Sequence record: OP617745.1
DNA: 64,000 nt
Direction: 5' to 3' (one strand)
The notes under the pieces were generated by a model. That model was not told the DNA's origin, did not search any database, and worked only from the letters and a program-made list of their open reading frames with translations. Shown here piece by piece: positions 1 to 64,000 of this stretch (position 1 is its first letter; each line of letters opens with the position of its first letter). Made by a program: the position numbers and the translations under genes.

Positions 1-218
1 GTTTTTGATTTAATTCTTTTATTTTTACCACGTTCAGGATGACCTTGTTTCATACTCAAAAATGAATTTGGCTTTATTAAAAATTCTCCATATTGTGGAT
101 CTATAATTATAATTTTAGTTCTATTATTAATATATACTGTTTTACTATAATCAAATTCCACATCTGTTCTTATTCTTTTTGCATCTATAATAAATTCTTC
201 TTGTGTTTTTCTACGCAT
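1..218 (-). CDS. N-terminal part of a repeat-containing (DUF723-like) putative homing endonuclease, truncated by the window edge
   Basis: Manual translation from ATG at 218: MRRKTQEEFIIDAKRIRTDVEFDYSKTVYINNRTKIIIIDPQYGEF...KQGHP, the same repeat as ORF 16860-17858; not in the ORF track. Confidence 0.7.
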   Translation of the reverse strand, partial: MRRKTQEEFIIDAKRIRTDVEFDYSKTVYINNRTKIIIIDPQYGEFLIKPNSFLSMKQGHPERGKNKRIKSK

Positions 219-273
219 TATTATAATCTCTTTGTCAATATATAAAAATATTTAGTTATGATGGTTTTTGTGC

Positions 274-302
274 TTGACAATTTTTTTTATATAAGTTATT
301 AT
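274..302 (+). promoter_or_regulatory. sigma70 promoter
   Basis: TTGACA-17nt-TATTAT upstream of the AAA+ ATPase. Confidence 0.75.
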
Positions 303-331
303 GTTGTTATTGAATGAAGAGGTGATTGAAA

Positions 332-1102
332 ATGCATCCACGCCTAGAAAAAGCACAACAAATTCAAAAAAACTTCGATTCCATGATGAGTGCTTTGGAA
401 TGTCTTCTTGATTATAAATCAACTATTAACTCTCTTATTATTTGTGGTAAGGGTGGTTGTGGTAAAACATACAATGTAGAAAAGCGTCTCAAAGAAGCTC
501 ATGACCGTGCTGAAATTAACTTCACTTCTATTAGTGGTAAAGTTAGTACTATGGGTTTGTATGAAACATTATATAAAACTCGTAATAGTACTGATGTATT
601 AGTACTTGATGATGTTGATGTATTCAATTCAGAAGCAAATTTTGATCTATTAAAAGCAATCCTTGATACTTCTGATGAACGTGTTGTATCATATGCTACA
701 ACAAATAAACATCTAAAAAATAATGGCATTCCAATGTCTTTTGACTATCGAGGTAAAGTCATATTCATCACAAATAAAGATTTGTCAAAAATGGCAAAAT
801 CTAATACAAAATTAGCACCACATGTTGATGCATTACTAACTCGTTCTATTTTTGTTGATCTTCAAATTTTTAGCAATGAAGAAGTTATGATTCATATTGA
901 GAATATTATGCTCAGTACTAATATTCTCAAAAATTATGGTATTAATCAAAGTGGTTCAACTCAAATTATGAATTGGATGTTGAAACATGAATCAAAATTA
1001 CGTTCTCCATCATTACGTATGCCAGTACTGATAGCATCATTGTATAATAAATTCCCATATGATTGGGAAGAACGATGTGAAAACTTATTCCTGGAGAAAT
1101 AA
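332..1102 (+). CDS. AAA+ family P-loop ATPase
   Basis: Walker A GKGGCGKT, Walker B VLVLDDVD, sensor-1-like GKVIFITN; SD GAGGTG favours ATG at 332. Confidence 0.85.
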   Translation: MHPRLEKAQQIQKNFDSMMSALECLLDYKSTINSLIICGKGGCGKTYNVEKRLKEAHDRAEINFTSISGKVSTMGLYETLYKTRNSTDVLVLDDVDVFNSEANFDLLKAILDTSDERVVSYATTNKHLKNNGIPMSFDYRGKVIFITNKDLSKMAKSNTKLAPHVDALLTRSIFVDLQIFSNEEVMIHIENIMLSTNILKNYGINQSGSTQIMNWMLKHESKLRSPSLRMPVLIASLYNKFPYDWEERCENLFLEK

Positions 1103-1416
1103 TGAAATACAAATGTACAGTGTATAAAGAAGGTATTGTATTCATAGAAGTCTATGTAGATGATGATATTTGGTTTGAAGTTGATGAATGTTTTGATACA
1201 AATGTATACGTATCAAAAAATGGATATATCTATGAATATAATTTAAATCACGATTTTGGTTCAATGCAAGATGATGAACTATTTCAAATGAGTACTGTAA
1301 TTTCTATTCCTTTTGATTTAAAAATCATTAGAGAAGCCCATAAACAATTCAGTACTATTATAAAAGAAAATTCATCATTATTGTATCATTATATATTAGT
1401 AACAGAGGACGAATAA
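1102..1416 (+). CDS. hypothetical protein, FQxS-motif family
   Basis: QDDELFQMSTV; coupled to the ATPase stop codon. Confidence 0.75.
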   Translation: MKYKCTVYKEGIVFIEVYVDDDIWFEVDECFDTNVYVSKNGYIYEYNLNHDFGSMQDDELFQMSTVISIPFDLKIIREAHKQFSTIIKENSSLLYHYILVTEDE

Positions 1417-1544
1417 TGAAACCAGAACAATGGATCATCGATGATATGCGTGCTATGCGTAAGATTGAAAATAAATCATACGAAGAACAAGCATACTTAG
1501 ATCTTCTTCAATGGTATGTTAAAGTAATCCAATCAAAGGAATAA
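1416..1544 (+). CDS. small hypothetical protein (42 aa)
   Basis: Manual ORF MKPEQWIIDD..., coupled to upstream stop, SD GAGGA. Confidence 0.55.
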   Translation: MKPEQWIIDDMRAMRKIENKSYEEQAYLDLLQWYVKVIQSKE

Positions 1545-1546
1545 TT

Positions 1547-1894
1547 ATGTTAGACTTTATGCTAAAAAGTGAACTATCTCATACTATTGGATATAGTATT
1601 GCAGTACTGATCGTATTCAGCTTTTTGTTTGAAAAAATCAATTGGCTATTCAAAACCAATATCTATAAAAAGTATTATAAAGTTAAAAGTTTTGACAGAC
1701 AAATCTTTTTGGGTATAATGTATACATTAACATTATACTGTAGTATATTCGAAGTTGGATTTGTACTGGCTGATTCACCATTAACATTATATCTTTCATT
1801 GTATACACTTTTTCTTATACCATTTTCTTTGTATATTTTTTGTACTAAAATGTTCAATAAAATTATTGAATTCCGAAATAAATTACCGGACTGA
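1547..1894 (+). CDS. small multi-TM membrane protein, paralog of 1910-2257
   Basis: About 3 hydrophobic segments; KINWLFKTNIYKKYY...NKLPD. Confidence 0.8.
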   Translation: MLDFMLKSELSHTIGYSIAVLIVFSFLFEKINWLFKTNIYKKYYKVKSFDRQIFLGIMYTLTLYCSIFEVGFVLADSPLTLYLSLYTLFLIPFSLYIFCTKMFNKIIEFRNKLPD

Positions 1895-1909
1895 TATGGA
1901 GTAATATAA

Positions 1910-4396: not shown

Positions 4397-4984
4397 ATGA
4401 AACGCATAACTCGCAGCAAAAATGTGATCAGGGATAGATTTCGCAAGGTAAACATTATTAAGTACAGTACTATTGCATTAGCATTAAGTACTACATTTGT
4501 ACTCACTGCATGTGATGAACCAACAAATGTAGACGTATACAAATCATTAGAACAATGCAAAACTTCTGGAAAAAATCCAGCACAATGCGAAGAAGATTAC
4601 AAAAATGCACTAAAGCAAAGTGTCAGTACTGCACCGCATTATAAATCACAAAGCGAATGCTACGCAGACTTTGATACAGTATGCCAGGAAGGTCATTACA
4701 GTACTGGTGGTATGTTCTTCTATCCTATGATGACAGGATTCCATAGTTCAGGACAAGGATATCATTCACAACCTTTATATAGTCATAAAGGTAATTACGT
4801 TGATGCTGGTGGAAATAATTACGGATCAACTTACAGTACCACTACTAACAGAACTGTACCAAGATCCGGTCTAACACAAAAAGCACCAACCAGTACTATA
4901 ACCAGAAGTGGATTTGGTAGTACTGTTTCAAGTCGTAGCTTTTCAAGTTCTCATAGTTCATCAAGCCATTCATTTGGTGGTTAA
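4397..4984 (+). CDS. ygiB: DUF1190/YgiB-like lipoprotein
   Basis: Lipobox LTAC; VYKSLEQC...QC...APHYKSQSECYADF...C...FYPMMTGF...SQPLY...TITRSGFG and Ser-rich tail, typical of DUF1190. Confidence 0.8.
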   Translation: MKRITRSKNVIRDRFRKVNIIKYSTIALALSTTFVLTACDEPTNVDVYKSLEQCKTSGKNPAQCEEDYKNALKQSVSTAPHYKSQSECYADFDTVCQEGHYSTGGMFFYPMMTGFHSSGQGYHSQPLYSHKGNYVDAGGNNYGSTYSTTTNRTVPRSGLTQKAPTSTITRSGFGSTVSSRSFSSSHSSSSHSFGG

Positions 4985-7135: not shown

Positions 7136-7240
7136 ACTATATTGGACGATATGGTCATTATAGTAGACAATTTAATGGATATAGGTGATTGTATGTGAGT
7201 AAGAATAGTATAGTACTAATAATAATGAGTAGGAATTGAT

Positions 7241-7300
7241 AAGAATGATTCAGTACTATTAAGAATGATTAAGTACTATTCAGTACTATTCAGTACTGAT
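7241..7300. repeat. tandem 10-bp-register repeat rich in AGTACT
   Basis: aagaatgatt cagtactatt aagaatgatt aagtactatt cagtactatt cagtactgat. Confidence 0.8.
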
Positions 7301-7579
7301 ATGCCACTAAGTCCGTTTATAAAGTCGCACCCAGTGGGCTACATTTGTAACTATTCAGTACTGAATAATTCAATGCATATATTATTTCAGTACTTAATCA
7401 TTAGCAAACTATTAATTTCAATATCTCCTTTAGATAATATTTCGTATCTTATATTAACAAAAATCTGAATAGCATGTCAAGAAAAATCTGGATTACCAAC
7501 GAGAAAAAATCTGGATTTTAAAAATTTTGAAATGTCGTTTATAGTTCAGGAAAAAAATGAAATTATAACAAGAAAATTG

Positions 7580-8114: not shown

Positions 8115-8232
8115 GAGTGAGAATGATAATGATTCTCATTTGAATTGGATGAGAACGATTCTCATTTACAGTTGCAAATGATAATAGATTGCATTTACGA
8201 ATGGTTCTCATTCGCAGATGATAATGATTCTT
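8115..8232. promoter_or_regulatory. array of about 5 Fur-box-like sites
   Basis: GAGAATGATAATGATTCTC at 8119-8137 (16/19 to GATAATGATAATCATTATC), TGAGAACGATTCTCA at 8150-8164, and further AATGATAAT units. Confidence 0.7.
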
Positions 8233-8376
8233 GAATTTTTTCCATTAGCTAGACTACCCCGTAGGATATATAATATCCTGGAGTATCTGCTTAATTTTTC
8301 AAAATCTGGATTAATAATATCAGTACTATCCAGGATATGCAATACCCAAAACAAAAATAAATTCTAAAAAAATCTA

Positions 8377-8405
8377 TTGACATAATATTCCAGTACTGTC
8401 ATAAT
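8377..8405 (+). promoter_or_regulatory. sigma70 promoter, left arm of a 33-bp inverted repeat
   Basis: TTGACA-17-CATAAT. Confidence 0.8.
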
Positions 8406-8411
8406 ATAAGC

Positions 8412-8459
8412 AAGTCAGAAAAATGACGTTTGCCCACAGGGTGCGGAGGAACATCTATT
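8412..8459 (+). ncRNA. two-hairpin RNA motif copy
   Basis: GTCA-GAAAAA-TGAC then GCCC-ACA-GGGT GCGGAGGAACATCTATT. Confidence 0.55.
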
Positions 8460-8463
8460 AAAT

Positions 8464-8482
8464 GAGAATGATAATCATTTAC
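8464..8482. promoter_or_regulatory. Fur box at the centre of the convergent cassette
   Basis: GAGAATGATAATCATTTAC, 16/19 to consensus. Confidence 0.7.
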
Positions 8483-8489
8483 AATATTG

Positions 8490-8533
8490 AATAGATTTCC
8501 GCACCCTGTGGGTTAAGGAATTTCGCTTCCATG
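8490..8533 (-). ncRNA. two-hairpin RNA motif copy
   Basis: Reverse complement: GGAA-GCGAAA-TTCC, ACCC-ACA-GGGT GCGGAAATCTATT. Confidence 0.55.
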
Positions 8534-8539
8534 TAAAAC

Positions 8540-8567
8540 ATTATACAGTACTGGAATATTATGTCAA
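8540..8567 (-). promoter_or_regulatory. sigma70 promoter, right arm of the inverted repeat
   Basis: Reverse complement TTGACA-16-TATAAT. Confidence 0.8.
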
Positions 8568-8632
8568 TAGATTTTTTATCTGAACAAATTATTTTTTTGT
8601 TATATAATTACATATAAAAAAGGATTAAATTT

Positions 8633-9160
8633 ATGGTATGGAAAACACTTAAAGAAAATGATTTATATGAAATAGATGAATATGGAAATATTAGAAATAA
8701 ATCAACTATGCTAATAAGGAAAACTTCATTAAATGAGAATGGATATAAACAAATTATATTATCGTACAAAGGGAAAATATCTACTTATAAAATACATAGA
8801 TTAGTAGCAAATAATTTCCTTGCTCCACCAACAAAAGAGCAATTAGAATGGGCTAAAACTACAAAATATAAAGTTGTTCAAGTAAATCATAAGGATGGAA
8901 ACAAATTAAACAATCATAAAGACAATTTAGAATGGAATACTAATAGTGAAAACATGATTCATTCTTTTAAAAATCTTAATAGATTTAGACCAGGAAAAGG
9001 AAGTTCAAATATTAATAGTAAGCTTACAAAAGAAAATGAAAAATTTATATTGACTAATTATAAAAAGCGTGATAAGAAATATGGATTAGAAGCATTGGCG
9101 AGACAATTTAATGTTAGTGCAACAACTATTGCAAGATGCATTAATAATAATAAAAAATAA
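8633..9160 (+). CDS. NUMOD4/HNH homing endonuclease
   Basis: WKTLKENDLYEIDEYGNIRN (NUMOD4); HRLVANNFL...VNHKDGNKLNNHKDNLEW (HNH). Confidence 0.9.
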   Translation: MVWKTLKENDLYEIDEYGNIRNKSTMLIRKTSLNENGYKQIILSYKGKISTYKIHRLVANNFLAPPTKEQLEWAKTTKYKVVQVNHKDGNKLNNHKDNLEWNTNSENMIHSFKNLNRFRPGKGSSNINSKLTKENEKFILTNYKKRDKKYGLEALARQFNVSATTIARCINNNKK

Positions 9161-9163
9161 TAT

Positions 9164-9192
9164 TTGACAAGATTATTCAGTACTGCTATTAT
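9164..9192 (+). promoter_or_regulatory. early sigma70 promoter, representative of more than 25 similar promoters in 9-27 kb
   Basis: TTGACA-agattattcAGTACTGc-TATTAT. Confidence 0.85.
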
Positions 9193-9213
9193 ATATTCAT
9201 ACCAAACAGCAAA

Positions 9214-9233
9214 GGGAATCAGTACTGATTCCC
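9214..9233. repeat. 20-bp palindrome GGGAATCAGTACTGATTCCC used as a leader hairpin (copies at 10124, 10539, 16649, 18974; variants at 9727, 14597, 20238)
   Basis: Direct sequence comparison; lies between promoter and AAGGAG SD in all copies except 9727. Confidence 0.9.
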
Positions 9234-9250
9234 TGTAAAGGAGAACTACC

Positions 9251-9421
9251 ATGAAATACGCATACTCTTATTTTATTGTAAACGGTGAACGTTTGACCAT
9301 CGGCCAGGCTGCTGTAAAACATGAAATCATTTGCGATGAGCTGGCGAAGATGCTACCAGGTGAAACGCAAGAGTTTTACAAAGGCTTTCAGAAAGTCACT
9401 GTAACACGCTGCGAAGATTGA
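9251..9421 (+). CDS. small early protein (56 aa)
   Basis: Manual ORF with its own promoter and AAGGAG SD. Confidence 0.75.
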   Translation: MKYAYSYFIVNGERLTIGQAAVKHEIICDELAKMLPGETQEFYKGFQKVTVTRCED

Positions 9422-9486
9422 TCCAGTACTGGGGCAGCAATGCCCCTTTAAACGTCCTGTAACGCATTGTAAGAGGTTTTTATAAT

Positions 9487-9714
9487 ATGGCTATAGAAGT
9501 TAACGCTGGGGATATAAAGGCGGCTGTACTGCGTACCCTGAAAGCATACGGCAGAAAGCTGAATGATCGCAACGTTCCCTATTATTTCCTTGCTGCTACT
9601 CATAAAATGGCAATCGCTGAGGCTCGCGGCTGGCTGAATGATCGCAGTACTGTAAAGAGTACCAGAACAAGAAACGCAATTGAGCGATGGATAAAAGAAT
9701 TAAATCATTTCTAA
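9487..9714 (+). CDS. hypothetical early protein
   Basis: ORF track. Confidence 0.75.
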   Translation: MAIEVNAGDIKAAVLRTLKAYGRKLNDRNVPYYFLAATHKMAIAEARGWLNDRSTVKSTRTRNAIERWIKELNHF

Positions 9715-9787
9715 TAGTTCAGTTAAGGGATTCAGTACTGATTCCCTGTTCAGTACTGAAATTATAAGGGGAGTTAATTAATTCCCC

Positions 9788-9802
9788 TTTACAAATCTTT
9801 AC
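9788..9802. promoter_or_regulatory. CpxR-like box (TTTAC-N5-TTTAC)
   Basis: Reverse complement GTAAAGATTTGTAAA, 10 nt upstream of the -35 at 9813. Confidence 0.55.
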
Positions 9803-9812
9803 AAAAGAATGG

Positions 9813-9895
9813 TTGACATAGTATTTCAGTACTGGTATTATGTATTCATAGACAGAACAAGTCTTTGACCCACCGGGTGCGGAGGAGTATCTATT
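9813..9895 (+). ncRNA. promoter plus two-hairpin RNA motif copy
   Basis: TTGACA-17-TATTAT; AGAC-AGAACAA-GTCT; ACCC-ACC-GGGT GCGGAGGAGTATCTATT. Confidence 0.55.
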
Positions 9896-9904
9896 AGATT
9901 GAAT

Positions 9905-9923
9905 GAGAATGATAATGATTCTC
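9905..9923. promoter_or_regulatory. Fur box
   Basis: GAGAATGATAATGATTCTC, identical to 8119-8137. Confidence 0.7.
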
Positions 9924-10161
9924 ATTTACTGTACTGAATATATTCCAGCACCCTTTTTGGGCTTTTCGATTTCTCTCTACTTGTTAATAAGTATACCATA
10001 ATCAGTACTGAATGCAATGCTCTTTACAAATCTTTACAAAAGAAAATAATTATAAAAAGTACTGAAAAAGTATTTGACGTAATAATGTAGTACTGGCATA
10101 ATACATCCATACCAAACAACAAAGGGAATCAGTACTGATTCCCTGTTAAGGAGTAACTAAA

Positions 10162-10449
10162 ATGTTTAATGCTAATGATCATATTGTTAAAGAGTTTTCT
10201 TTCAGTAAGCCGGTGCATTTAGAAAACGGTGAAACGCTGGACAATAAATTTTATGGTAGTATTATTAAGCGTTATACATCGCGTAGCAGTACTGGAATTT
10301 TGTGGGAAGTGAATAAACAGTACAATGGTAATTCGCTGGTTGTCAATGAGTGGGAAAGTTATGCAGTAGCTGAAATGGATTTTTCTAACTTCATTACTGA
10401 ATCTTTGAACGATGATATTTTTTACAAGTTCACAGCGGAAAGGGTTTAA
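10162..10449 (+). CDS. hypothetical early protein
   Basis: Own promoter, leader palindrome, SD. Confidence 0.8.
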   Translation: MFNANDHIVKEFSFSKPVHLENGETLDNKFYGSIIKRYTSRSSTGILWEVNKQYNGNSLVVNEWESYAVAEMDFSNFITESLNDDIFYKFTAERV

Positions 10450-10576
10450 AAAGTTTTAAAGAGTATTTGACAACATAAACCAGTACTGTATAATGTATTG
10501 CATAGGGCGGCACAAGTCGCCCACAACTAACCAGCAAAGGGAATCAGTACTGATTCCCTGTTAAGGAGTAATTACT

Positions 10577-52596: not shown

Positions 52597-53134
52597 TACT
52601 GAAATGTACTTATTGTACAAAAATATTTTACTTGAATTAAAAAGATTGTTGCATACCGATAATGTACGCGATAATTATCTACATCAAGATATAAATGGTG
52701 AAATTTATTGTATAATTTCTGATGATAAAATCGCATTATATGCTAATTCCGAAAATATAGCATTCACTTATGTTTTATTTGCTTATTCGTTTAATTCACC
52801 AAATTACGTATCAGAAAAATATAGAGTAGAATATGATTCATATGTATACTTTGATCGTGCTAATTCAACTAATGAATATATGATTAATCACGAAACAAAT
52901 AATATCATCCAATTGATTAAAGAAAATGAGTTGAGTTCAGATGAATTAGAAAGTTTATTATTCCAACACAATACATTGTATTCAGATGAAGATAAATTTT
53001 GTATTTGGATGGATTATTATATCAGAGATTACATTGAAGATAAACATTATTTCTGTGTAAACTACAACAGACTAAATGAATTCAGTACTGACATATATGA
53101 AAATATTCTATTGGAATTAAAGAAATATGATTGA
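52556..53134 (+). CDS. hypothetical protein, FQxS-motif family
   Basis: LESLLFQHNTL; start uncertain. Confidence 0.75.
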   Translation: MTLTNLSSTTSTNDTEMYLLYKNILLELKRLLHTDNVRDNYLHQDINGEIYCIISDDKIALYANSENIAFTYVLFAYSFNSPNYVSEKYRVEYDSYVYFDRANSTNEYMINHETNNIIQLIKENELSSDELESLLFQHNTLYSDEDKFCIWMDYYIRDYIEDKHYFCVNYNRLNEFSTDIYENILLELKKYD

Positions 53135-53738
53135 ATTAAAATTTAAAATACAAGAACTAAAAGAACTGGTAATTCACTTAAAGAATGTAAATGATAAATT
53201 CCATCTCTCAGAAAATTTCATGATTTATATTCCAGGTACCGAATCAACACTCATTCACGAAATGTCAACAAAAGGGATATATTCCAATATTACATTGAAA
53301 TCAAGAGATTACAAAACTAATATCTATTGCAACACCATCTCTTTAATCAGGAGTTCAGATCCCTCTGAAGAACGTATCAGGAAATCTAAAACAGTAGGTT
53401 CAATTTATAGTAGTTCATGTAATATATATTCTTTATCCGATAATACCAAAATGCAGATTGGTATATATGAAAACTATCATAGAAAGTGTGATACCAGTGA
53501 AAATGGAACTATTGAATTGCCTGATTATGTAAAAGATTCTGATGAATTTGAAGCATTATTATTTCAATACAGTACAGAGAGTGATATTAAGTACAATAGA
53601 TTATTAAAAATGCGTATCATAAAAGAAATATATGATGTACTTCAATATGAAGAAATATCAATAGATGATACATTATTTGATTTGGATTCAAATGATTTAA
53701 AAACAATTATACAGGAATTGAAATTAAAATTATGCTAA
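53127..53738 (+). CDS. hypothetical protein, FQxS-motif family
   Basis: FEALLFQYSTE. Confidence 0.8.
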   Translation: MIELKFKIQELKELVIHLKNVNDKFHLSENFMIYIPGTESTLIHEMSTKGIYSNITLKSRDYKTNIYCNTISLIRSSDPSEERIRKSKTVGSIYSSSCNIYSLSDNTKMQIGIYENYHRKCDTSENGTIELPDYVKDSDEFEALLFQYSTESDIKYNRLLKMRIIKEIYDVLQYEEISIDDTLFDLDSNDLKTIIQELKLKLC

Positions 53739-54295
53739 CATTGTCCGAAATTCTGGAATACGATAATAAAATTATCAATCTCTTGGGTGATATATACTTT
53801 GAATTCAACAAAAAAGAAGATAAAAACAACAATAAAGACACTATACTGAAAGTAAATGATAGTGAATTAGTTGTATTAGAAAATAATCTTCATTTTTATT
53901 CTGTTGTACTTAAAGTGTATAATGGTATGTCAGAAACTCCGTGGTATATGGTGAAAAACACAGATGATTATGATACATTTCGTGGTATTAAACCATTCAT
54001 CAACGAGTATGGTATTTTTTGTACTGCAAATGATTACGATGTATTATATGATGAATACGATCAATTCGGTACTGTTCATAACGTATTCACAGAAGAACAA
54101 TATTCCTGTATAGAAAGTACTGCTTTTCAGTTAAGTACAGAGTTTGATTTACAAGTAGTAAGAGCATTAGCAATGCAAACCAATTTGTATTACAACAAAA
54201 GACACTATCAAATACTGTGTAATACAAAAATTCAGGATCATTTATATAATCCAAAATTAATTTTAAATCTAGAAAAATATCTGGAAACACTATGA
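53732..54295 (+). CDS. hypothetical protein, FQxS-motif family
   Basis: IESTAFQLSTE. Confidence 0.8.
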   Translation: MLTLSEILEYDNKIINLLGDIYFEFNKKEDKNNNKDTILKVNDSELVVLENNLHFYSVVLKVYNGMSETPWYMVKNTDDYDTFRGIKPFINEYGIFCTANDYDVLYDEYDQFGTVHNVFTEEQYSCIESTAFQLSTEFDLQVVRALAMQTNLYYNKRHYQILCNTKIQDHLYNPKLILNLEKYLETL

Positions 54296-54783
54296 AAGAA
54301 ATTATTGAATTAATAGAACTGATGCAGTCAAGTATAAGTTCATGTAAACTTGCAACCGGTGAACACAATTTGAATGCGGATTTTGATTTAGTAGTCAATA
54401 ATCAAAAGAAATGTATTCACTTGATTAAAAAATCCAGTACTAAAGCAATCAAACATACAGCACTCATGATAGCTTCTTCACATCCTGCTAAAAAATATAA
54501 TTCAAATATTGCTAATATAAGTTCACTGTACAAACCAGAAAGTATATCTTCATATATCAGTTCAATTAAAAGTGAATTAGATTTTCATAAATGCACTTTG
54601 GATTCTTATGAAGAATTAGAATTTCAGTACAGTACAGTAATTACACGAAGTGATATTTTTATAATTCAATGCTTGTTATATTCAATTGATTTTAAAGATA
54701 TTGTGTACATGACAAATGATTTTATGAAATATAATTATATTGAAATACTCAGATCATTAAAGGACAAATTATGCCAAAATTAG
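54292..54783 (+). CDS. hypothetical protein, FQxS-motif family
   Basis: YEELEFQYSTV. Confidence 0.8.
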   Translation: MKEIIELIELMQSSISSCKLATGEHNLNADFDLVVNNQKKCIHLIKKSSTKAIKHTALMIASSHPAKKYNSNIANISSLYKPESISSYISSIKSELDFHKCTLDSYEELEFQYSTVITRSDIFIIQCLLYSIDFKDIVYMTNDFMKYNYIEILRSLKDKLCQN

Positions 54784-55364
54784 ATGCACAGTACTGTGAT
54801 AAATTACTGAATGCATTGATTACTATACAAAAGAATATAAAAAAAGAAAAGAGTATTCAAATTTACTATAATGATAGTTATATTATTGTACAATGTAATC
54901 CAGATGGTAATTACGTAGAGTTCAGTTTTAAGAAAGAAGATGTTCATGATTGCATTAGTATTGATTTACATGAAGCAACACCACATCAAAGTTTAAAAAA
55001 TATTATTAAAGCATATAAAAGAACTACTTATGCATTTGACACTTTAGTTCACAGATATAAAACATTTTATTGTATGTTCGATACAGACGAATATGATTTC
55101 AATTTAGTAGGATTTGATGAAAATAACATCATTAACATTCCTTATGATTTTGATGATGAATTATATTTTCAGTACAGTACTTTATATAGTTTACCACCAC
55201 AGAGTGATCTTGAGCTTCACAAAAGTATTCATAAAAAATGCAAAAATGAACTACCAAATAAAAGTGTAGTTAGAATTTCATATCTATCCATCGAATTAGA
55301 TCAACAAGAAATGGATGAAATTCTGGAATCTTTGTATTCATTGGTTCCTGTGTTTAAGCATTAA
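54771..55364 (+). CDS. hypothetical protein, FQxS-motif family
   Basis: DDELYFQYSTL. Confidence 0.8.
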   Translation: MPKLDAQYCDKLLNALITIQKNIKKEKSIQIYYNDSYIIVQCNPDGNYVEFSFKKEDVHDCISIDLHEATPHQSLKNIIKAYKRTTYAFDTLVHRYKTFYCMFDTDEYDFNLVGFDENNIINIPYDFDDELYFQYSTLYSLPPQSDLELHKSIHKKCKNELPNKSVVRISYLSIELDQQEMDEILESLYSLVPVFKH

Positions 55365-55420
55365 AATCCCCCTTGACTGGGGTTTTTTTATTTGTTATAA
55401 TAAAAAATAGAGAATATAAA

Positions 55421-56047
55421 ATGAAAAAAGAATCATATAACATACTTCGTGTATGTGAAAATTTAATATTGCTGTTACTGGCTTATAAGAAAAATATAAA
55501 TTTAAGCAAGAAAATTCTTGATTATCATATTAATATTAATATTACTTGTAGTAATCATATTTCAATATATTTAAATATTAGTAATTTTGGTTCTATTACA
55601 ACAACATCATCCAACATAATTTCATTTAATGCTGATAATATTCAACCAGTTGAATTAAATTTACCAATTGAAGATATTAAAGGTGAAATGATTTATTTTG
55701 ATGACCGATATTGTGAATATGATGTTAATAGTCCAAATTTAGTAGGAGCGTATTTAAAAAAATATGATCCTGATATTGATGGATACAATGAAACAAACTG
55801 CCATGAAGTAATGGAAAAGACGTATGATGAATGGGCTTTTCAGTACAGTACATTATACGACTTTGTTCCAGATAAAGAAGATTATTTTTACTTGAAAAAT
55901 TTCATGCATAAATTGGGTAACGAATTCGATTATACATATTCAAACATTTTATTCGAATCAAAAGTGGATATTGTGAATCTAAAATCCGCAATTGATATAT
56001 GTACTGAAACTGTTAAAAGGAAGATTGATGAAAACTCCGATATTTGA
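55421..56047 (+). CDS. hypothetical protein, FQxS-motif family
   Basis: YDEWAFQYSTL; ATG 55421 after a terminator/promoter. Confidence 0.8.
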   Translation: MKKESYNILRVCENLILLLLAYKKNINLSKKILDYHININITCSNHISIYLNISNFGSITTTSSNIISFNADNIQPVELNLPIEDIKGEMIYFDDRYCEYDVNSPNLVGAYLKKYDPDIDGYNETNCHEVMEKTYDEWAFQYSTLYDFVPDKEDYFYLKNFMHKLGNEFDYTYSNILFESKVDIVNLKSAIDICTETVKRKIDENSDI

Positions 56048-56543
56048 AAAATCAAAGAAATATGCACAACGTATATCCGATTGCATTGAACTAATACAAT
56101 CAATGAGAAAAACTTTTTACATAAATCACAAAGGTTCTTTTCGATATCAACACGAAAGTAACGGAATTATTACCATGAGCAGAGGTAAATCACCTTTTGG
56201 TGAGGTTGTATTAATATATGTACCAGATAATATTCATGTTACGTTCATTGATAATTATCTAATAGAAATATCAAATTATATTCCAGTACAAGATTATACA
56301 GAAGAAACTGAATTTCAATATAGCACTTTGTATAATAATGAAGAATTATTAATGCATTATATATATTCCATTCTATGGAATTTGGACATTAAAGGTAAAA
56401 TTCATATAAACCCAAAAATAAATTTAAGAACATATACAATGGCATTGAAAAATATCAATAATTATTTTGAGATTACAAATTATAATTTATATAAAGAATT
56501 GTGTAATAAAAAATTCAAATCAATGGAAATAAACCACTTATGA
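56028..56543 (+). CDS. hypothetical protein, FQxS-motif family
   Basis: TEETEFQYSTL. Confidence 0.8.
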   Translation: MKTPIFEKSKKYAQRISDCIELIQSMRKTFYINHKGSFRYQHESNGIITMSRGKSPFGEVVLIYVPDNIHVTFIDNYLIEISNYIPVQDYTEETEFQYSTLYNNEELLMHYIYSILWNLDIKGKIHINPKINLRTYTMALKNINNYFEITNYNLYKELCNKKFKSMEINHL

Positions 56544-57124
56544 TTGAAAGATATGAGTTTAGTACAAGAATATTAAATGAAGCACTCAAAAAAGTGCCAT
56601 CAATTGTGGAAAAACATAGTAAATTATATTCTAAGTACAATAATAATAGTACATTCAATGTTGGTATTAAAAATCAGAATTATGAAACTAACATTGATGA
56701 TAGTTCCATTGAATATGGTTCAGCAAATGGTTCTTCATGGACAATTGAATTTGACAATTCACTCCATGATTATTATAACTGGACACCAGAATATAATGAA
56801 TTTAGCTTTAATACATCATCTGTTGCTTTTTTGGTTAGTAGTGAACATATGTTGTACGCTCTTTATGATTTTAATACTGAAATTTTTATAATTGAAGATA
56901 CCGATTTAACTTTTGAAGTAAATTGTATAGATTCTCTACGTGAAATGATTTTTACATTACAACTGGAGTACTCAGATATCATTGAGACTGAATTACTATG
57001 GAGTATGCTATCACCAATGATTGAGTTTAAAAAGTTGTTGACACCTGACAAAGATGTTGCTATTATATTTGAACCATATAGACAAGAGTTTTTAGAATTA
57101 AACCCAGAGATACCAAACACATGA
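56540..57124 (+). CDS. hypothetical protein, degenerate FQxS family
   Basis: LREMIFTLQLEYS at the equivalent position. Confidence 0.75.
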   Translation: MIERYEFSTRILNEALKKVPSIVEKHSKLYSKYNNNSTFNVGIKNQNYETNIDDSSIEYGSANGSSWTIEFDNSLHDYYNWTPEYNEFSFNTSSVAFLVSSEHMLYALYDFNTEIFIIEDTDLTFEVNCIDSLREMIFTLQLEYSDIIETELLWSMLSPMIEFKKLLTPDKDVAIIFEPYRQEFLELNPEIPNT

Positions 57125-57531
57125 TTCTATATCACTGTAGTACTGTAAAAATTGACAGCTTTTATATCCCCTTTGGTGGCTTACATTTTGGTGGTATTAA
57201 TAGTGCTTTAGAAGCTGCGTTACGTAAGCTGAGAAGCCCCAGAAACACCTTGGATCACAAGGAGATATATATCCATAAATGTTTTGTGGAACTCGGTAAA
57301 ATGCAACAAAGTGAGGATTTGGGTGGTGAGGATTCGTGGAGAGTGGTTATCGAAGAATGCTCACGATTAGGATTTAATTCAGTACAATACAAGAATGTAT
57401 ACGAACCTGATTCAGTTCCTAGTTATATGATTTTGGATTCCAGTAGAGTAAAAATCATAGAAGTGGATTGTATTCATATGGATGATGCCGAACTAATACT
57501 GGAAGAATTTTATGATTCATATAGTACTTAG
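57121..57531 (+). CDS. ADP-ribosyltransferase-like (ART-PolyVal-like) protein
   Basis: LYHCS...GLHFG...A...GFNSVQYKNVYEP...SYMILDSSRVK. Confidence 0.55.
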   Translation: MILYHCSTVKIDSFYIPFGGLHFGGINSALEAALRKLRSPRNTLDHKEIYIHKCFVELGKMQQSEDLGGEDSWRVVIEECSRLGFNSVQYKNVYEPDSVPSYMILDSSRVKIIEVDCIHMDDAELILEEFYDSYST

Positions 57532-57551
57532 ACTAATACGGGTAATAATTC

Positions 57552-58103
57552 ATGTCAGAACCAATAGAATATTTTAAAGCATGTTCTCGTTTAGTTAATT
57601 CAATATCAAAGGACTTTTTATCAAGAAAACCAAAAGAATATATTGATAACGTACTTGGATATAATTTTATATTATATTGTGGTTTTAGTTCATTGAGAAT
57701 TTCAGTTGATGATGAAAACGAAACACCAGTACTTACAATTTTTAATGTTGATTACATCACATGCAACCCAGAAGTATTTCATGAACCACGTTGGTGTCTA
57801 ACTAATATAGTTAACAGTGGTATTCAATGTGGTTTGGTGAAAAAAATTACCCACCGTTTTGATTCAGACAATGAACTCATAGTTCATGAGAATGATTTTA
57901 GTTCTAAGTTATTCTCTAATACTTTAACTGAAGAAGAATTTTTCCAGTACAGTACAGTACTTAAATTAAACACATTGGAATATTATCTGGAATGGAATAA
58001 AACTATAATGCAAGACAATACAAATGAAAAAGTTGTTTGGCATTGGTATTATGGTGATTTCATTTCAAAAGAAGCTATTGATGAATTATCAAAAAGAATA
58101 TAA
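57552..58103 (+). CDS. hypothetical protein, FQxS-motif family
   Basis: TEEEFFQYSTV. Confidence 0.8.
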   Translation: MSEPIEYFKACSRLVNSISKDFLSRKPKEYIDNVLGYNFILYCGFSSLRISVDDENETPVLTIFNVDYITCNPEVFHEPRWCLTNIVNSGIQCGLVKKITHRFDSDNELIVHENDFSSKLFSNTLTEEEFFQYSTVLKLNTLEYYLEWNKTIMQDNTNEKVVWHWYYGDFISKEAIDELSKRI

Positions 58104-58115
58104 TAAGGATTAAAA

Positions 58116-58595
58116 ATGATGCTTGACATTATCGGAAATTTAGATATAGTTAATCAAATCATTCAATCAGCAATTGATGATATTAAGAAGAAGGAGATTG
58201 AAGTACGATGGAATTTCTTATCGTCTGATATTGGATACCTTGTTGATATTAGTGAACCAACAAAGAAACAAATGGTTGTACAAATCAATGCACTAAGTAA
58301 CAGGCAATCTCTCTGTAAATTTTATATTACAAAGAATGGGATAATTCTCAGATATAATAATAAATTGTTGTTTGAATACAAAAACAGTACTAAAACATTC
58401 ATTACAAATTTATTTGATAAACCATTTTATATTGATGATTTAGAAAGTACTTTCTTTACTCAAAGATGTTTAAGTTCATTAGATAATATAGTATTTGATT
58501 ATGATATCATGACTGAAACATTAAAGAAAACACAGGATTTATATTATGCCTACTTGGTGTTTACCAAAAAACGAGAAAATGCTAACACAGCCTGA
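58116..58595 (+). CDS. hypothetical protein, degenerate FQxS family
   Basis: LESTFFTQRCL. Confidence 0.75.
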   Translation: MMLDIIGNLDIVNQIIQSAIDDIKKKEIEVRWNFLSSDIGYLVDISEPTKKQMVVQINALSNRQSLCKFYITKNGIILRYNNKLLFEYKNSTKTFITNLFDKPFYIDDLESTFFTQRCLSSLDNIVFDYDIMTETLKKTQDLYYAYLVFTKKRENANTA

Positions 58596-59025
58596 CGATA
58601 GCGTATATAAGTGTATTGAGCATTTCGATTATTTTATTAATTCAAACAAAGAATTTATTGTGGTCGATTGTATACCATTGTATTTCATTAAATCCGATTC
58701 AAATACAATCAAAGAATTTAATATGTACTATGGTAGTGAATTTATATCAATTAAATTAATCAATAAATATTTGAAAAATTCTTATTCAATTGAAAGTTAT
58801 TACAATGGAATATTTTTGCTCGGTATTAGTAATGAGTACATAAATTCAGTACTATTAAAATCAAACACAAATGAACCAGTTTATGCTGATCGAGAAGCAT
58901 TCAATGAAATCGATTTCTTCCAGTATACATGTGGTGATGCTTATATACCATTACACACCAATACGATGTGTTTAGTTAAAGATAAATTGTTGGAGATTGA
59001 AAATGATTTCAAAAAATACTATTAA
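58579..59025 (+). CDS. hypothetical protein, FQxS-motif family
   Basis: NEIDFFQYTCG. Confidence 0.75.
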   Translation: MLTQPDDSVYKCIEHFDYFINSNKEFIVVDCIPLYFIKSDSNTIKEFNMYYGSEFISIKLINKYLKNSYSIESYYNGIFLLGISNEYINSVLLKSNTNEPVYADREAFNEIDFFQYTCGDAYIPLHTNTMCLVKDKLLEIENDFKKYY

Positions 59026-59494
59026 AACTGGAATGCAATGTTTGATTGATTATTTTGAAAATCCAAAACCATACACTGAGGTACTGAAAGGTGATCACAC
59101 ATTTCATTACTACGGTGATTATATTCAGATTATAGTTGGATTTCATACATTAAAACTTTGTATTATTGATAATAAAAATTCAAATTGTTTTATTTTCTCT
59201 CCAGTAAAAATGCGAGAAGATGATATTTGCACCGAATTCGGTACTATTGTTGCTGTAATTGATGATGATGGTAGAAAAACACATGTATACGATACACTAT
59301 TCATTGAAAGTTCTACTTTGTTTCAATTGAGTTTAATTCACGATATTAATATTGATGGATTGGATATATTGATGTATAAGTATAGTGAATTACTTGAATT
59401 ACTAGGGAAATCTAAAATTAATCACAATACTAAATACATTAAAGAAGCATGTGATAATTTATCAAAAGCTCACGTGCAATACTCTAACGAATAA
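59003..59494 (+). CDS. hypothetical protein, FQxS-motif family
   Basis: ESSTLFQLSLI. Confidence 0.75.
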   Translation: MISKNTIKTGMQCLIDYFENPKPYTEVLKGDHTFHYYGDYIQIIVGFHTLKLCIIDNKNSNCFIFSPVKMREDDICTEFGTIVAVIDDDGRKTHVYDTLFIESSTLFQLSLIHDINIDGLDILMYKYSELLELLGKSKINHNTKYIKEACDNLSKAHVQYSNE

Positions 59495-62110: not shown

Positions 62111-62179
62111 TATATTAAAGGCAGAGATGTACTTCTCTGCCAATTTTTAATTCAAAACAAAATAAGGTTTAGTAGATAT

Positions 62180-63040
62180 ATGAAATTATATTTTTTATTT
62201 TCTTTTGCTGAAGATATGTATGGATTTGCAGAAGTTGCAGAAAGTGATGGAATCTCATCACATACCAGGCATCAAAAACACCCACATGAGTTTTATAATA
62301 ATTTATTCATGTTTATGCAATATAAAATTTTCTCATCTGAATTTGATAATTTAGATCACCCATGGGAATTACCTTTAATTGATATTCCAGACGAATACGT
62401 ATTTCAGTTCATGTTAATGGGTCTGGAAGACTATGACTTAGTTGTTTATAACTACAGAACTAAACGCATTATGCTTGGAACTCACGATAGTTCCATTGTA
62501 TATGTTTCAAGTACCAATGATGAGTTAGCGTCTGATGAAGGTAATTATAGAAAATCTTATGGTTATATAGAAAATGATAATGATTTTATTTTAGATTTTC
62601 GTGTATCAGAAGAAGAAAGAAGAAAAAGAGAAACTTATCAAGTGGAGTTAAAACCAGATAATGGTTATAATGAAATTTTGGAAGTACTTAAACCATACTA
62701 CCTTGATATTGTTTATAAGAAATATAAACGCCTGCTAAATCATCTTAGCGAAAAAGAACCAATTGGTTTTGAAACCAATTCATTACGTAATAGCATCATA
62801 TTTCCACCTAGAGTAATGAAATATGGTGAAGTTTCTAAACACAAGATGAAACTATATCCCGATGATATTGAAGTTCTATATCATTCGTGGTTGAATAATG
62901 ATGAACTATATGTAGAAAATAAAAAGTTAATGCGTATAAGTAATAATGATGATAGATTGCTACAAGCGTGGTATAATGATTCATATTCTGCATTTACTGA
63001 CAGTAATTCTGAGTATTGGAAGAACACAGGACAAAAATAA
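62180..63040 (+). CDS. hypothetical protein
   Basis: ORF track, 286 aa. Confidence 0.8.
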   Translation: MKLYFLFSFAEDMYGFAEVAESDGISSHTRHQKHPHEFYNNLFMFMQYKIFSSEFDNLDHPWELPLIDIPDEYVFQFMLMGLEDYDLVVYNYRTKRIMLGTHDSSIVYVSSTNDELASDEGNYRKSYGYIENDNDFILDFRVSEEERRKRETYQVELKPDNGYNEILEVLKPYYLDIVYKKYKRLLNHLSEKEPIGFETNSLRNSIIFPPRVMKYGEVSKHKMKLYPDDIEVLYHSWLNNDELYVENKKLMRISNNDDRLLQAWYNDSYSAFTDSNSEYWKNTGQK

Positions 63041-63043
63041 ACC

Positions 63044-63072
63044 AAGGACGGCGTAAAAACCGTCCTTTTTTA
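63044..63072 (+). terminator. intrinsic terminator
   Basis: AAGGACGG-loop-CCGTCCTT-TTTT. Confidence 0.8.
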
Positions 63073-63119
63073 ATACATAAATATCTGAACGAAAAATAGA
63101 TTTAAGATATAATGTTTAT

Positions 63120-63560
63120 AATTACAAGGATGTTGGATGCACAGGATGTGCATACACTAAAAACCTGATCCACTCGAAACAAGTAGAGGGCAGATGAGTA
63201 TACCAACAATACGCCGTGTAGAGGATACCCGTTTAGGCGAGTCGACACGTTAAAGGGCAAAGGTAGCACGATTGCCCCAATCTCTCAGGAGATTGATAGG
63301 ACGCGAATCCAGTTAAGTCTGGACATTAAGTGTAAAAGGGAGATTATTTTCTTTTAGATATTTTGGAAATAATCACAGTATTGAATTGCTTGAATAGTTC
63401 GGTACTGAAGTGCAAGTATGTTTAAACTTGTGACCGTTGCATGTGACTGCGATAAGGGGAAACCGGGCAACCCGCCTCTGCCTAAATAAATTGAATTTAT
63501 TAGAATTCGCAATTCAAGGAATTTCGACAGCTACGAGCTTCAAGGCTTAGCTTTTTTATT
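63120..63560 (+). ncRNA. candidate structured ncRNA with 5' CsrA-consensus sites
   Basis: TATAAT at 63108; TTACAAGGATGT, TGGATG, GCACAGGATGTGC; several hairpins; no long ORF. Confidence 0.4.
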
Positions 63561-63619
63561 TCTCTTCCCCTCCCTGTGGGGGGATGAAAATATCTCGTGC
63601 AAACGCCTTCAAGTATTGA

Positions 63620-63727
63620 AATTCACGAAGTGAATTGAAATTACTTGTTCTGTAGTCGAACGACAGTGAGACGTGAGAACAAGTAATTTCTGCATGTATC
63701 AACGAAGTGCAAACGGAGTTGATACAT
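63620..63727 (+). other. cluster of DNA hairpins with GNA triloops
   Basis: AATTCAC-GAA-GTGAATT; 15-bp stem 63637-63651/63676-63690; ATGTATCAAC...GTTGATACAT. Confidence 0.6.
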
Positions 63728-63782
63728 AGCACTTTAAAACATTATTGAATTCAATAATTAATATTATTATGGTTTTAAAGAA

Positions 63783-64000
63783 ATGAATTTAGAAGAACAG
63801 AAGAAAATCGCTTCAAGAAAACAAAAGAAAGGGATTGATATTAAGTACTACAATACTGATTTTGATTTAGTACTAAATCCAGATACCACATTTAGTGGAT
63901 ATGTAGTAAGAACAGAAAAAAATACATTGTCAAATATTAAAGAATATGAAAATGGAAAAGAGATTGGAATCATTTCATTTAGACCTACACAAACCCCCAC
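63783..64000 (+). CDS. hypothetical protein, truncated by the window edge
   Basis: Open frame from ATG 63783 to the end: MNLEEQKKIASRKQKKG... Confidence 0.65.
   Translation, partial: MNLEEQKKIASRKQKKGIDIKYYNTDFDLVLNPDTTFSGYVVRTEKNTLSNIKEYENGKEIGIISFRPTQTP

Follow-up and report, generated by a model that had tools for sequence, protein, structure and literature searches.

Introduction

The highly iterated palindrome of cyanobacteria, HIP1 (GCGATCGC), is enriched 15- to 300-fold, and a role in chromosome structure has been proposed for it (Xu, Lawrence and Durand 2018, PMC5861425). A second described system, the SlmA sites of E. coli, comprises 12-bp palindromes, numbering tens, whose scatter over the genome marks it and whose reader is a dimer of the helix-turn-helix class (Tonthat et al. 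2011, PMC3020112); SlmA binds GTGAGTACTCAC and requires G, T, and a purine at flanking positions 1-3 (PMC3020112). In this work, the palindromic hexamer AGTACT was analyzed in Klebsiella phage KP13-7, where its excess finds its closest known counterpart in HIP1. The analysis is centered on a 64-kb stretch of DNA, hereafter the window, which corresponds with 100% identity to positions 124001-188000 of record OP617745.1; coordinates below are those of the window unless record positions are indicated.

KP13-7 (357,701 bp) is a RaK2-like jumbo myovirus of the genus Alcyoneusvirus. The window carries 141 complete annotated genes, all on the + strand, nearly all of them small and labeled hypothetical, and its GC content is 30.2%, somewhat above the ~27% that had been judged by eye in a first-pass annotation of the same DNA. 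In relatives with known physical ends, the homologous stretch lies within or adjoins the long direct terminal repeat, and we therefore regard the window as the early region. The KP13-7 genome outside the window was taken in pieces and AGTACT was counted per piece, while other relatives were represented by samples of 9-50 kb each, several of them from the same syntenic block. The unrelated 52%-GC Enterobacter phage ENT1 served as a proxy for host word density. No description of an AGTACT excess was found in the literature on the motif, on RaK2, CBB, phAPEC6, and fEgEco12, or in a jumbo-phage review; the string 'SCAI' in the RaK2 paper denotes a culture medium.

Results

Abundance of AGTACT in coding and non-coding DNA

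AGTACT was found 276 times in the window, compared with 14.1 +/- 4.0 (maximum 26) in 100 dinucleotide-preserving shuffles. It is by far the top hexamer (order-1 Markov expectation 14.6, z = 68, 19-fold), the ranks below it are occupied by its own overlapping words, and it is the sole 6-bp palindrome strongly enriched in the window. The sites are distributed as follows:

1-64000, no strand: AGTACT field, 276 sites, with 165 in coding sequences (CDS), 108 intergenic, and 3 straddling a boundary

The hyper-enrichment in both coding and non-coding DNA noticed in the first-pass annotation is thus confirmed; its rough expectation of ~0.3 per kb is close to the computed 0.23 per kb, and its local counts (11 copies in 9179-10136 and 7 in 7212-7394) are exact. 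An order-4, i.e., maximal-order, Markov model predicts 254 copies, the pentamers AGTAC and GTACT occurring mostly inside the hexamer; such a model absorbs the signal and does not explain it. Across the whole 357.7-kb genome, 954 copies were counted against 81.5 expected (order-1 Markov, 11.7-fold), with every genome piece enriched 7- to 24-fold, which bears out the earlier description of the excess as genome-wide. Beyond a hot zone described below, the density is ~2.2-2.8 per kb; the genome as a whole carries ~2.7 per kb, or about one site per 375 bp, and its largest gap is 2.6 kb.

Within the window, the density is 3.2/kb in coding and 8.9/kb in intergenic DNA, and 60% of the sites fall within CDS. 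All three reading frames accommodate the word, as had been claimed: among the 165 coding sites, 81 encode Ser-Thr, 60 Val-Leu, and 24 x-Tyr-x. A synonymous-codon shuffle that keeps both proteins and codon usage yields 37.8 +/- 5.7 coding sites (z = 22), and shuffling codon order within genes yields 20.1 +/- 4.6 (z = 32). The first-pass annotation had allowed that the enrichment might vanish under a codon- and dinucleotide-preserving null model; with z = 22-32 in the codon-preserving shuffles, it clearly does not. Amino-acid contexts compatible with AGTACT are filled in 51%, 24%, and 51% of cases (phases 0, 1, and 2), compared with 14%, 5%, and 10% expected from codon usage. The dipeptides themselves are over-represented in window proteins, Ser-Thr 2.2-fold (159 vs. 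73 expected) and Val-Leu 1.85-fold (148 vs. 80 expected). The pressure acts at the DNA level, genome-wide, and distorts protein composition.

Two artefactual sources of the excess were rejected. Grouping by flank similarity resolved the 276 sites into 227 independent clusters, with 155 of the 165 coding sites being singletons, which rules out a repeat artefact; the codon shuffles and context-filling rates likewise rule out a codon or peptide artefact. Within genes, the sites are spread uniformly, with no bias to gene starts or ends. Their spacing is slightly over-even (mean coefficient of variation 0.92 vs. 0.98 +/- 0.04, p = 0.035), and 37 genes are devoid of AGTACT, compared with 49 expected.

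A 12-bp word with two-fold symmetry

The full consensus is the 12-bp palindrome TTCAGTACTGAA with AGTACT as its core. In the window, C occupies position -1 in 54% of sites and G position +6 in 56%, with T-rich positions at -2/-3 and A-rich positions at +7/+8; the composition of the left flank is the reverse complement of that of the right flank, despite all genes lying on the + strand. Mirrored flanks under one-way transcription speak for an agent of two-fold symmetry that recognizes duplex DNA, rather than for an RNA or peptide signal. The C/G flank recurs in intergenic sites (59%/69%), frame 0 (52%/57%), and frame 2 (52%/47%); in frame 1 (n = 24), C at -1 is kept (54%) and G at +6 is found in just 25%. 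Among the 1908 half-sites of the genome, TTC is the most frequent flank (16.6%, ~11 times the expectation). The form CAGTACTG, in which the hexamer had been said to occur often, is indeed frequent in the window (96 copies vs. 0.47 expected, ~200-fold), and the complete 12-mer TTCAGTACTGAA occurs 36 times in the genome vs. 0.044 expected (>800-fold).

Single-letter variants at the outer positions (NGTACT, AGTACN) are enriched 2-4 times and those at the inner four positions 1-1.7 times, a gradient that fits a core-plus-flank affinity landscape; GTAC overall is enriched 2.8-fold. No one-letter neighbor of AGTACT is depleted (AGTATT 1.6-fold, AATACT 1.15-fold), and the signature of very-short-patch-type repair is accordingly not seen. 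The flank preference also varies by genus, being A at -1 in phage Munch. A preference that is graded and shifts between genera in this way resembles binding affinity more than it does an enzyme site, which would be all-or-none.

AGTACT in early promoters, leaders, and arrays

The highest densities coincide with a hot zone built of repeated promoter-leader modules ahead of small genes:

7100-28500, + strand: hot zone, 151 sites (12.7/kb intergenic, 3.7/kb coding), early, terminal-repeat-type region
8392-26726, + strand: promoter-spacer family, 31 flank-defined members with AGTACT at -19 to -14, starting at 8392, 8547 (minus strand), 9179, 9828, 10089, 10482, 11636, 12013, 12385, 13016, 13245, 14490, 14558, 16023, 16614, 18300, 18641, 18936, 19588, 20201, 20684, 20714, 21302, 21490, 21802, 23108, 24063, 25317, 25759, 26303, and 26721
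11616-26706, + strand: second sites, exactly 20 bp upstream of the spacer site and abutting the -35 hexamer (AGTACT-TGC...), starting at 11616, 14470, 18916, 20181, 21470, 23088, and 26701
9213-25809, + strand: ten leader palindromes with AGTACT at the center, each 20-24 bp long and ~30 nt ahead of the start codon, at 9213-9234, 9726-9747, 10123-10144, 10538-10559, 14596-14617, 15484-15503, 16648-16669, 18973-18994, 22781-22802, and 25786-25809
7212-7394, no strand: seven-site array in a 1.5-kb gene-free stretch, with the sites at 7272, 7282, and 7292 exactly 10 bp apart
9151-10153, + strand: 11-site stretch, in which 9155-9243 and 10065-10153 are copies of one 89-nt promoter-plus-leader module and 9800-9850 is an additional promoter

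The early promoters share one layout, namely a -35 hexamer, 9 nt, AGTACT, G, and the -10 hexamer, which places AGTACT at -19 to -14. Strict matches to this layout number 15 in the direction of the genes, plus a single one in the opposite direction; 14 of the 15 have identical spacing, with exactly 9 nt from the -35 hexamer, and together with the family of 31 they substantiate the fixed position in promoter spacers that had been proposed from the letters of the window. In sigma-70 promoters, the extended -10 element is a conserved dinucleotide at -15/-14, one base before the -10 hexamer. The register found here is one base off: in 14 of the 15 strict promoters, the last letter of AGTACT is at -14 and the G next to the -10 hexamer at -13. 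At least seven promoters carry a second AGTACT 20 bp upstream (-39 to -34), at a distance of about two helical turns, and 20 bp is the most frequent inter-site distance in the window (11 times). Most AGTACT sites are not near any -10 element. The same promoter architecture was found in the E. coli phage phAPEC6 and the Salmonella phage Munch; it was not seen in PA5oct or T4, and the promoters in the supplement of the CBB paper are devoid of it.

The leader palindromes and the short tandem arrays, the latter exemplified by 7212-7394 with its 10-bp steps, had likewise been described in the first-pass annotation, and both were recovered. As RNA, the ten leader palindromes fold into hairpins whose stems of 9-10 bp close a GUAC loop (dG between -10 and -15 kcal/mol, z between -2.2 and -5.1), and their arms vary between copies with complementarity kept, i.e., they covary. 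We read this sub-class as transcript hairpins that carry AGTACT at the one spot where a palindrome can fit. At four spots (10123-10153, 14586-14617, 18965-18995, and 22773-22803), leader cassettes of ~31 bp with the AGTACT palindrome are cleanly absent from two 95%-identical phages, with clean indel boundaries; the cassette behaves as an insertable or deletable unit between promoter and ribosome-binding site.

Several further repeats accompany these elements. A perfect 33-nt inverted repeat (8367-8399 and 8545-8577) has arms that each constitute a complete early promoter including AGTACT, and that face each other over 145 nt holding a long hairpin. The box CCCACAGGGTGC is conserved together with the ~17 nt that trail it and lies ~25-30 nt downstream of early -10 elements, at 7338, 8433, 8512, 9869, 12978, 16531, 18680, 20606, 22674, and 24624. 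Ten copies of the box were counted in the window, nine in the early region of phAPEC6, seven in Munch, seven in 7t3, and none in PA5oct or T4; it is almost missing from the rest of KP13-7, and its conservation accounts for DNA matches of 82-94% to distant genera. Repeats on ATGATAATGATTCT, partly in inverted pairs, were found at 8118-8231, 8457-8486, and 9898-9927, in a 1.5-kb gene-free stretch together with other short repeats; they resemble iron-regulator (Fur) boxes.

Distribution among phages and association with GCGC absence

AGTACT ranks first among hexamers in all sampled relatives infecting Klebsiella, Escherichia, Salmonella, Erwinia, Pectobacterium, Cronobacter, and Yersinia. These comprise two other Klebsiella phages, the E. 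coli phages phAPEC6 and A4, the Salmonella phages Munch and 7t3, Erwinia phage Hallingskeid, Pectobacterium phage CBB, Cronobacter phage GAP32, and Yersinia phage fHe-Yen9-04. The next relatives, Pseudomonas phage PA5oct (3 vs. 11.9 expected) and Agrobacterium phage Atu_ph07 (1 vs. 2.1), show no excess in the stretches sampled, and neither do T4 (8 vs. 7.1) and ENT1 (5 vs. 5.1). TGCAGA in PA5oct, seemingly enriched, was considered as an analogous palindrome and rejected, being strand-biased, codon-driven, and not palindromic.

A second word trait has exactly the same distribution. GCGC is entirely absent from the 357.7-kb KP13-7 genome (126 expected) and from all sampled Enterobacterales-infecting relatives; in PA5oct, Atu_ph07, T4, and ENT1 it occurs at expectation. 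Expressed as densities, AGTACT reaches ~2.7 per kb compared with ~0.1 in ENT1, and GCGC 0 compared with ~7 per kb. Eight hexamer palindromes are absent from KP13-7, namely CTTAAG (0 vs. 83 expected), CTGCAG, GCATGC, AGGCCT, CCTAGG, GAGCTC, TCCGGA, and TGCGCA; CAGCTG occurs once and GATC is at 0.77 of expectation. The contrast drawn in the first-pass annotation with the usual depletion of palindromes in phages is therefore real, with GCGC and eight hexamer palindromes at zero, and AGTACT itself does not behave as an avoided restriction site, its count lying above, not below, expectation. On its own, such extreme avoidance of sites could account in part for what was reported of RaK2 DNA as 'restriction resistance'. 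Because of this word pressure, many common restriction enzymes have either zero or very many sites in these genomes.

The Chi octamer (GCTGGTGG) is also enriched, with nine copies in the window vs. 0.24 expected (4805, 13095, 15136, 20648, 22280, 23895, 25153, and 26367 on the + strand; 14242 on the - strand) and 13 vs. 1.2 expected genome-wide on the favored strand. Eight of the nine window copies point the same way and are found in the early, terminal-repeat-type region, an arrangement that suggests shielding of the incoming DNA end from RecBCD.

Conservation and turnover of sites

The window was aligned to two phages ~5% diverged, and changes were mapped on the three-taxon tree. AGTACT is found intact more often than other hexamers, in 88% vs. 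74% of cases in non-coding and 87% vs. 82% in coding DNA, and over its six letters the mismatch rate falls to ~0.6 of the flank rate. Losses are fewer than expected (39 vs. ~99, 0.4-fold) and gains more numerous (35 vs. ~9, 4-fold); as the neutral rates are averages over constrained and unconstrained positions, the loss deficit is conservative and the gain excess approximate, and some of the counted gains are indels, multi-base replacements, or cassette insertions. This pattern is that of a directional force, moderate per site, be it selection or biased conversion, with numbers near equilibrium.

Over longer distances, positions turn over and density is held: in 19 orthologue pairs of KP13-7 and A4, 16 of 42 sites are shared. 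The directional force targets the density of AGTACT and not its particular positions. Conservation at synonymous positions, which the first-pass annotation had named as a test, gave a result in the expected direction (ratio ~0.7) that falls short of significance and is taken up in the Discussion.

Candidate readers and writers of the word

A scan of 20 early window proteins gave one lead:

13495-13995, + strand: candidate reader, an early product of 166 aa that matches the N-terminal oligomerisation domain of H-NS at a borderline score

The match to PF22470 scores 22.9 bits, below the cutoff of 24.5, and four of seven family members match, the best at 26.7. Records of relatives label its homologues as DNA-binding protein, three AGTACT sites lie upstream of the gene (13166, 13245, and 13416), and homologues were detected in 51 jumbo phages, of Escherichia, Klebsiella, and Salmonella only, encoded in the terminal repeats; the family is small and limited to these jumbo phages. 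A first structure model was poor (pLDDT 62); a second, usable one (77.7) has its first helices in an order like that of H-NS, and a beta-hairpin and further helices come after them. A profile search of 1.84 billion representative proteins returned just five relatives of this product and no true H-NS.

Two methyltransferases are encoded outside the window. A PF05869 N6-adenine methyltransferase lies just beyond it (record positions 189021-189539, E = 4e-28), is 61% identical to the Munch enzyme, and has counterparts of 60-80% identity in 47 records, which we take to be the jumbo clade; in phages at large, the family is present in 1074 records, and ENT1 carries a member. This enzyme could methylate the adenines of the AGTACT core. 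The other, a 295-aa C5 enzyme (record positions 72931-73818), was located via the Erwinia phage annotation, and its best solved relatives are the mammalian DNMT3A/B catalytic domains, matched over the full length (E = 4e-22). For RaK2, its authors reported two methyltransferases and methylated DNA with CpG methylation (PMC3622015); the DNMT3-like enzyme fits that report and not AGTACT. A motif-regex hit for a C5 methyltransferase in a KP13-7 genome piece (L008:42267-43436) proved false, no T4-Dam-like methyltransferase was found, and the annotation holds no MutH-, MutS-, SeqA-, or Vsr-like gene. The genome further encodes a phage sigma factor with regions 2 and 3, outside the window, as well as its own type II topoisomerase subunits, primase, and terminase.

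The possibility that AGTACT sites are SlmA sites was rejected. The flank required by SlmA occurs in 20 of 1908 half-sites (~56 expected from base composition) and on both sides in 2 of 954 sites; G at -1 is disfavored in the phage sites (5.9% vs. 17% background).

Other features of the window

Pfam matches were obtained for several genes annotated as hypothetical:

332-1102: AAA ATPase
4397-4984: DUF1190
8633-9160: HNH_3 and NUMOD4 homing endonuclease
16092-16445: DUF7717
24728-25312: weak protein-kinase match

About two dozen genes of 160-200 aa, many of them overlapping, follow one another without interruption in 47219-59494, and the annotations of Munch, 7t3, and phAPEC6 show similar runs; this run has the look of a putative tandem paralogue array. 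Six phage tRNAs lie outside the window (record positions 83408-86805), including Ser(GCU), the reader of the motif-favored AGT codon.

Discussion

A proposed duplex-DNA reader as the preferred explanation

The enrichment, symmetry, promoter geometry, clade distribution, and directional turnover of AGTACT are direct observations. A dimeric duplex-DNA reader would best explain why the 12-bp word is symmetric, placed like an operator, bounded by clade, and under a pressure directed at its density. AGTACT would then be the core of the recognition word of a two-fold symmetric, clade-specific duplex-DNA-binding factor, acting both as an early-promoter operator and as a genome-wide mark or loading site; we propose this tentatively, rating its chances somewhat short of even. 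A dimeric reader specific to the Enterobacterales-infecting jumbo-phage clade would bind TTCAGTACTGAA, and at -19 to -14, sometimes also at -39 to -34, the dimer would compete with RNA polymerase or remodel it. In the simplest form, the reader would be a common switch of the early promoters, presumably a repressor, and the copies elsewhere in the genome would serve the same protein as a density-dependent loading or marking signal. Such marking might set the unmodified, AT-rich phage DNA apart from that of the host. The first-pass annotation had left binding, modification, DNA entry, and packaging side by side as possible roles; the symmetric flanks extending to 12 bp, the operator placement, and the clade limits favor binding by a duplex-DNA reader, although the sole candidate binder is weak.

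Several observations weigh against this explanation. Nothing in the sequence ties the coding-region copies to the promoter copies in function, and the perfect match with host order would fit a host-encoded reader equally. At synonymous third positions, the ratio of in-site to out-of-site mismatches (~0.7) is not significant (p = 0.14-0.18), and positional sharing across genera is no greater than predicted if each genome fills 55% of the available contexts independently (15 vs. 12.1 expected, p = 0.11). The leader palindromes keep complementarity and not arm sequence, which points to a hairpin rather than a protein half-site. The product of 13495-13995 is the sole candidate reader found, and a candidate and no more: searches against Pfam and PDB sequences gave no match to an H-NS DNA-binding domain, Foldseek gave no structural match in the PDB (best E = 0.42), and no homologue was detected in the Erwinia stretches examined, though the Erwinia phage is motif-rich.

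The duplex-DNA reader could be extended into a sequence-only code for self and non-self. Phage DNA saturated with AGTACT and purged of GCGC, and devoid of base hypermodification, would be organized, protected, or steered in its transcription by an AGTACT reader that also switches the early promoters, leaving a GCGC-directed activity free to act on host DNA; both traits would date from the base of the Enterobacterales-infecting clade. We regard this extension as speculative and rather unlikely.

Alternative explanations

Methylation offers a different account, in which a phage DNA methyltransferase acts on AGTACT, or on GTAC within it, and the methylated or hemimethylated sites form an epigenetic mark for replication, repair, or packaging; with such a mark, new DNA might for instance be told from old, or that of the phage from that of the host, much as GATC is used in the host. 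The core places an adenine on each strand, KP13-7 encodes the PF05869 enzyme conserved in 47 records, RaK2 DNA is reported to be methylated and its genome to encode two methyltransferases (PMC3622015), and the even spacing with a maximal gap of 2.6 kb is what strand- or self-marking needs. However, PF05869 is widespread (1074 phage records) and its carrier ENT1 shows no excess (5 vs. 5.1), the second, DNMT3-like methyltransferase fits CpG and thus has the wrong motif, and no MutH-, MutS-, or SeqA-like gene is annotated; methylation alone also leaves the 12-fold excess, the fixed promoter position, and the 12-bp flank preferences unexplained; we consider it a doubtful account of the whole pattern. 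It is improbable, in our estimate, that a host protein conserved in Enterobacterales reads AGTACT and is exploited by the phage, SlmA being the obvious candidate, or else another host DNA-binding or DNA-processing protein. The SlmA site GTGAGTACTCAC has the same central hexamer (PMC3020112), the excess marks each clade member sampled, their hosts being of seven Enterobacterales genera, and is missing from the relatives on Pseudomonas and Agrobacterium, and the phage embeds another host word, Chi, nine times in the window vs. 0.24 expected. Yet the flank that SlmA requires is about three-fold under-represented and G at -1 disfavored, T4 and ENT1 infect Enterobacterales without showing the excess, and the correlation with hosts is confounded with phylogeny, RecA identity being 65-83% inside the group and 58-60% outside; by RecA, the clade numbers 88 genomes.

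Gains at 4 times and losses at 0.4 times the neutral estimate would also be produced by a functionless process in which sequence-biased repair, nicking, or gene conversion turns near-sites into AGTACT. Parallels would be the shaping of words in E. coli by very-short-patch repair and the biased repair formerly put forward for HIP1. The turnover of positions between genera at a held density, the weak per-site conservation, the filling of about half of the opportunities whatever the gene, and the gains by multi-base replacement or cassette insertion all suit such a drive. Still, no one-step neighbor is depleted as very-short-patch repair would predict, no Vsr- or MutH-like gene is annotated, the exact position at -19 to -14 shared by 31 promoters, the pairing of sites at 20 bp, and the over-even spacing are left unexplained, and the distortion of protein composition would be costly for a neutral by-product; we give this process little credence. 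The chances seem slimmer still for a preferred site of a two-fold symmetric phage DNA enzyme, such as a type II topoisomerase cutting with a 4-bp stagger (A|GTAC|T), or a nicking, priming, or packaging enzyme. The genome encodes type II topoisomerase subunits, primase, and terminase, the palindrome has a 4-bp core, and its spread is even, gaps nowhere exceeding 2.6 kb; enterobacteria have known extragenic palindromes that serve gyrase. No result of the analysis, however, ties topoisomerase, primase, or terminase to AGTACT, the excess-free stretches of PA5oct and Atu_ph07 carry a RecA homologue along with a primase subunit gene (PA5oct) and terminase large-subunit genes (Atu_ph07), and the promoter placement is again left unexplained. 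Finally, AGTACT might act in RNA, as a hairpin loop or as a protein or RNase site in early transcripts, or might reflect a peptide preference. The ten leader palindromes, which lie just ahead of the ribosome-binding site, fold stably around a GUAC loop, and have covarying arms, agree with a role in RNA, and it is for these leader hairpins only that such a role is entertained. However, a palindromic hexamer is simply the sole form of the word able to occupy a hairpin center. For the bulk of sites, an RNA or peptide role is largely refuted and to us highly improbable: the flanks are strand-symmetric despite one-directional transcription, the sites occupy all three frames and untranscribed spacers and are uniform along genes, the synonymous-codon shuffle shows that the excess does not come from protein sequence, and no known RNA family reached the Rfam gathering threshold in the window.

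Significance and comparison with known systems

The function of HIP1 is unsettled after two decades, and here a like signal occurs in a compact, experimentally tractable virus clade that offers three extra handles, namely ~30 promoters with a fixed site, a sharp phylogenetic on/off boundary, and a partner trait in the loss of GCGC. Who reads AGTACT, and why, is directly answerable by maps of occupancy, modification, and expression. The answer would expose a layer of jumbo-phage biology, by which an unmodified, AT-rich 350-kb genome is told from host DNA and the early program is switched, and which the ~80% of genes without known function have so far hidden in these phages. On the practical side, the AGTACT pressure visibly distorts codon and dipeptide usage.

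Among other known systems, the GATC sites read by Dam, SeqA, and MutH in enterobacteria combine a short palindrome, an adenine on each strand, and a dense spread over the genome. AGTACT resembles them in being a palindrome with an adenine per strand, dense enough to act anywhere, in a phage with a methyltransferase gene; to our knowledge, GATC is not strongly over-represented genome-wide in enterobacteria. Uptake sequences and FtsK-orienting sequences are over-represented genome words that are asymmetric and strand-oriented. With Chi-type words, AGTACT would share a DNA-processing machine as reader and a weak benefit per copy, whereas its palindromic form and symmetric flanks set it apart from the asymmetric, strand-biased words of Chi and FtsK. 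The REP/BIME elements of enterobacteria are extragenic palindromes of 35-40 bp; they and AGTACT are alike as abundant palindromes able to form transcript hairpins, and the leader cassette is like a small insertable palindromic unit. In contrast to REP/BIME, 60% of the AGTACT sites lie inside CDS and the unit is 6-12 bp, so that only the ten leader palindromes resemble these elements.

The mode of action proposed here has its counterpart in phi29 p6 and SPO1 TF1, genome-wide phage DNA-binding proteins that shut off early promoters: one protein would coat or mark the viral genome and repress its early promoters. phi29 p6 recognizes DNA shape and supercoiling, and SPO1 TF1 a modified base; neither uses a hyper-abundant sequence word, and in this the AGTACT proposal differs from both. 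No homologue of p6 or TF1 was found, no search having been aimed at them. SlmA sites share with AGTACT the 12-bp palindrome, the identical central hexamer, and a scatter over the genome; the SlmA flanks are three-fold under-represented in the phage, and ~2.7 sites per kb compare with tens in the whole of E. coli.

The likeness is greatest with HIP1. Each is a short palindrome in great excess inside and outside genes, with no codon or peptide explanation, kept beyond neutrality as a clade-wide trait, and of function not settled. As in HIP1-type words, the AGTACT excess is at least 10-fold, genic as well as intergenic, and accompanied by conservation above neutral, here modest. The two differ in word, length, and base composition, in residing in a virus clade instead of cellular chromosomes, in the fixed core-promoter position (not reported for HIP1), and in the weaker per-site conservation and rapid turnover of AGTACT. 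With neither the word GCGATCGC nor a cyanobacterial chromosome involved, the relation between AGTACT and HIP1 is a likeness in kind, not membership.

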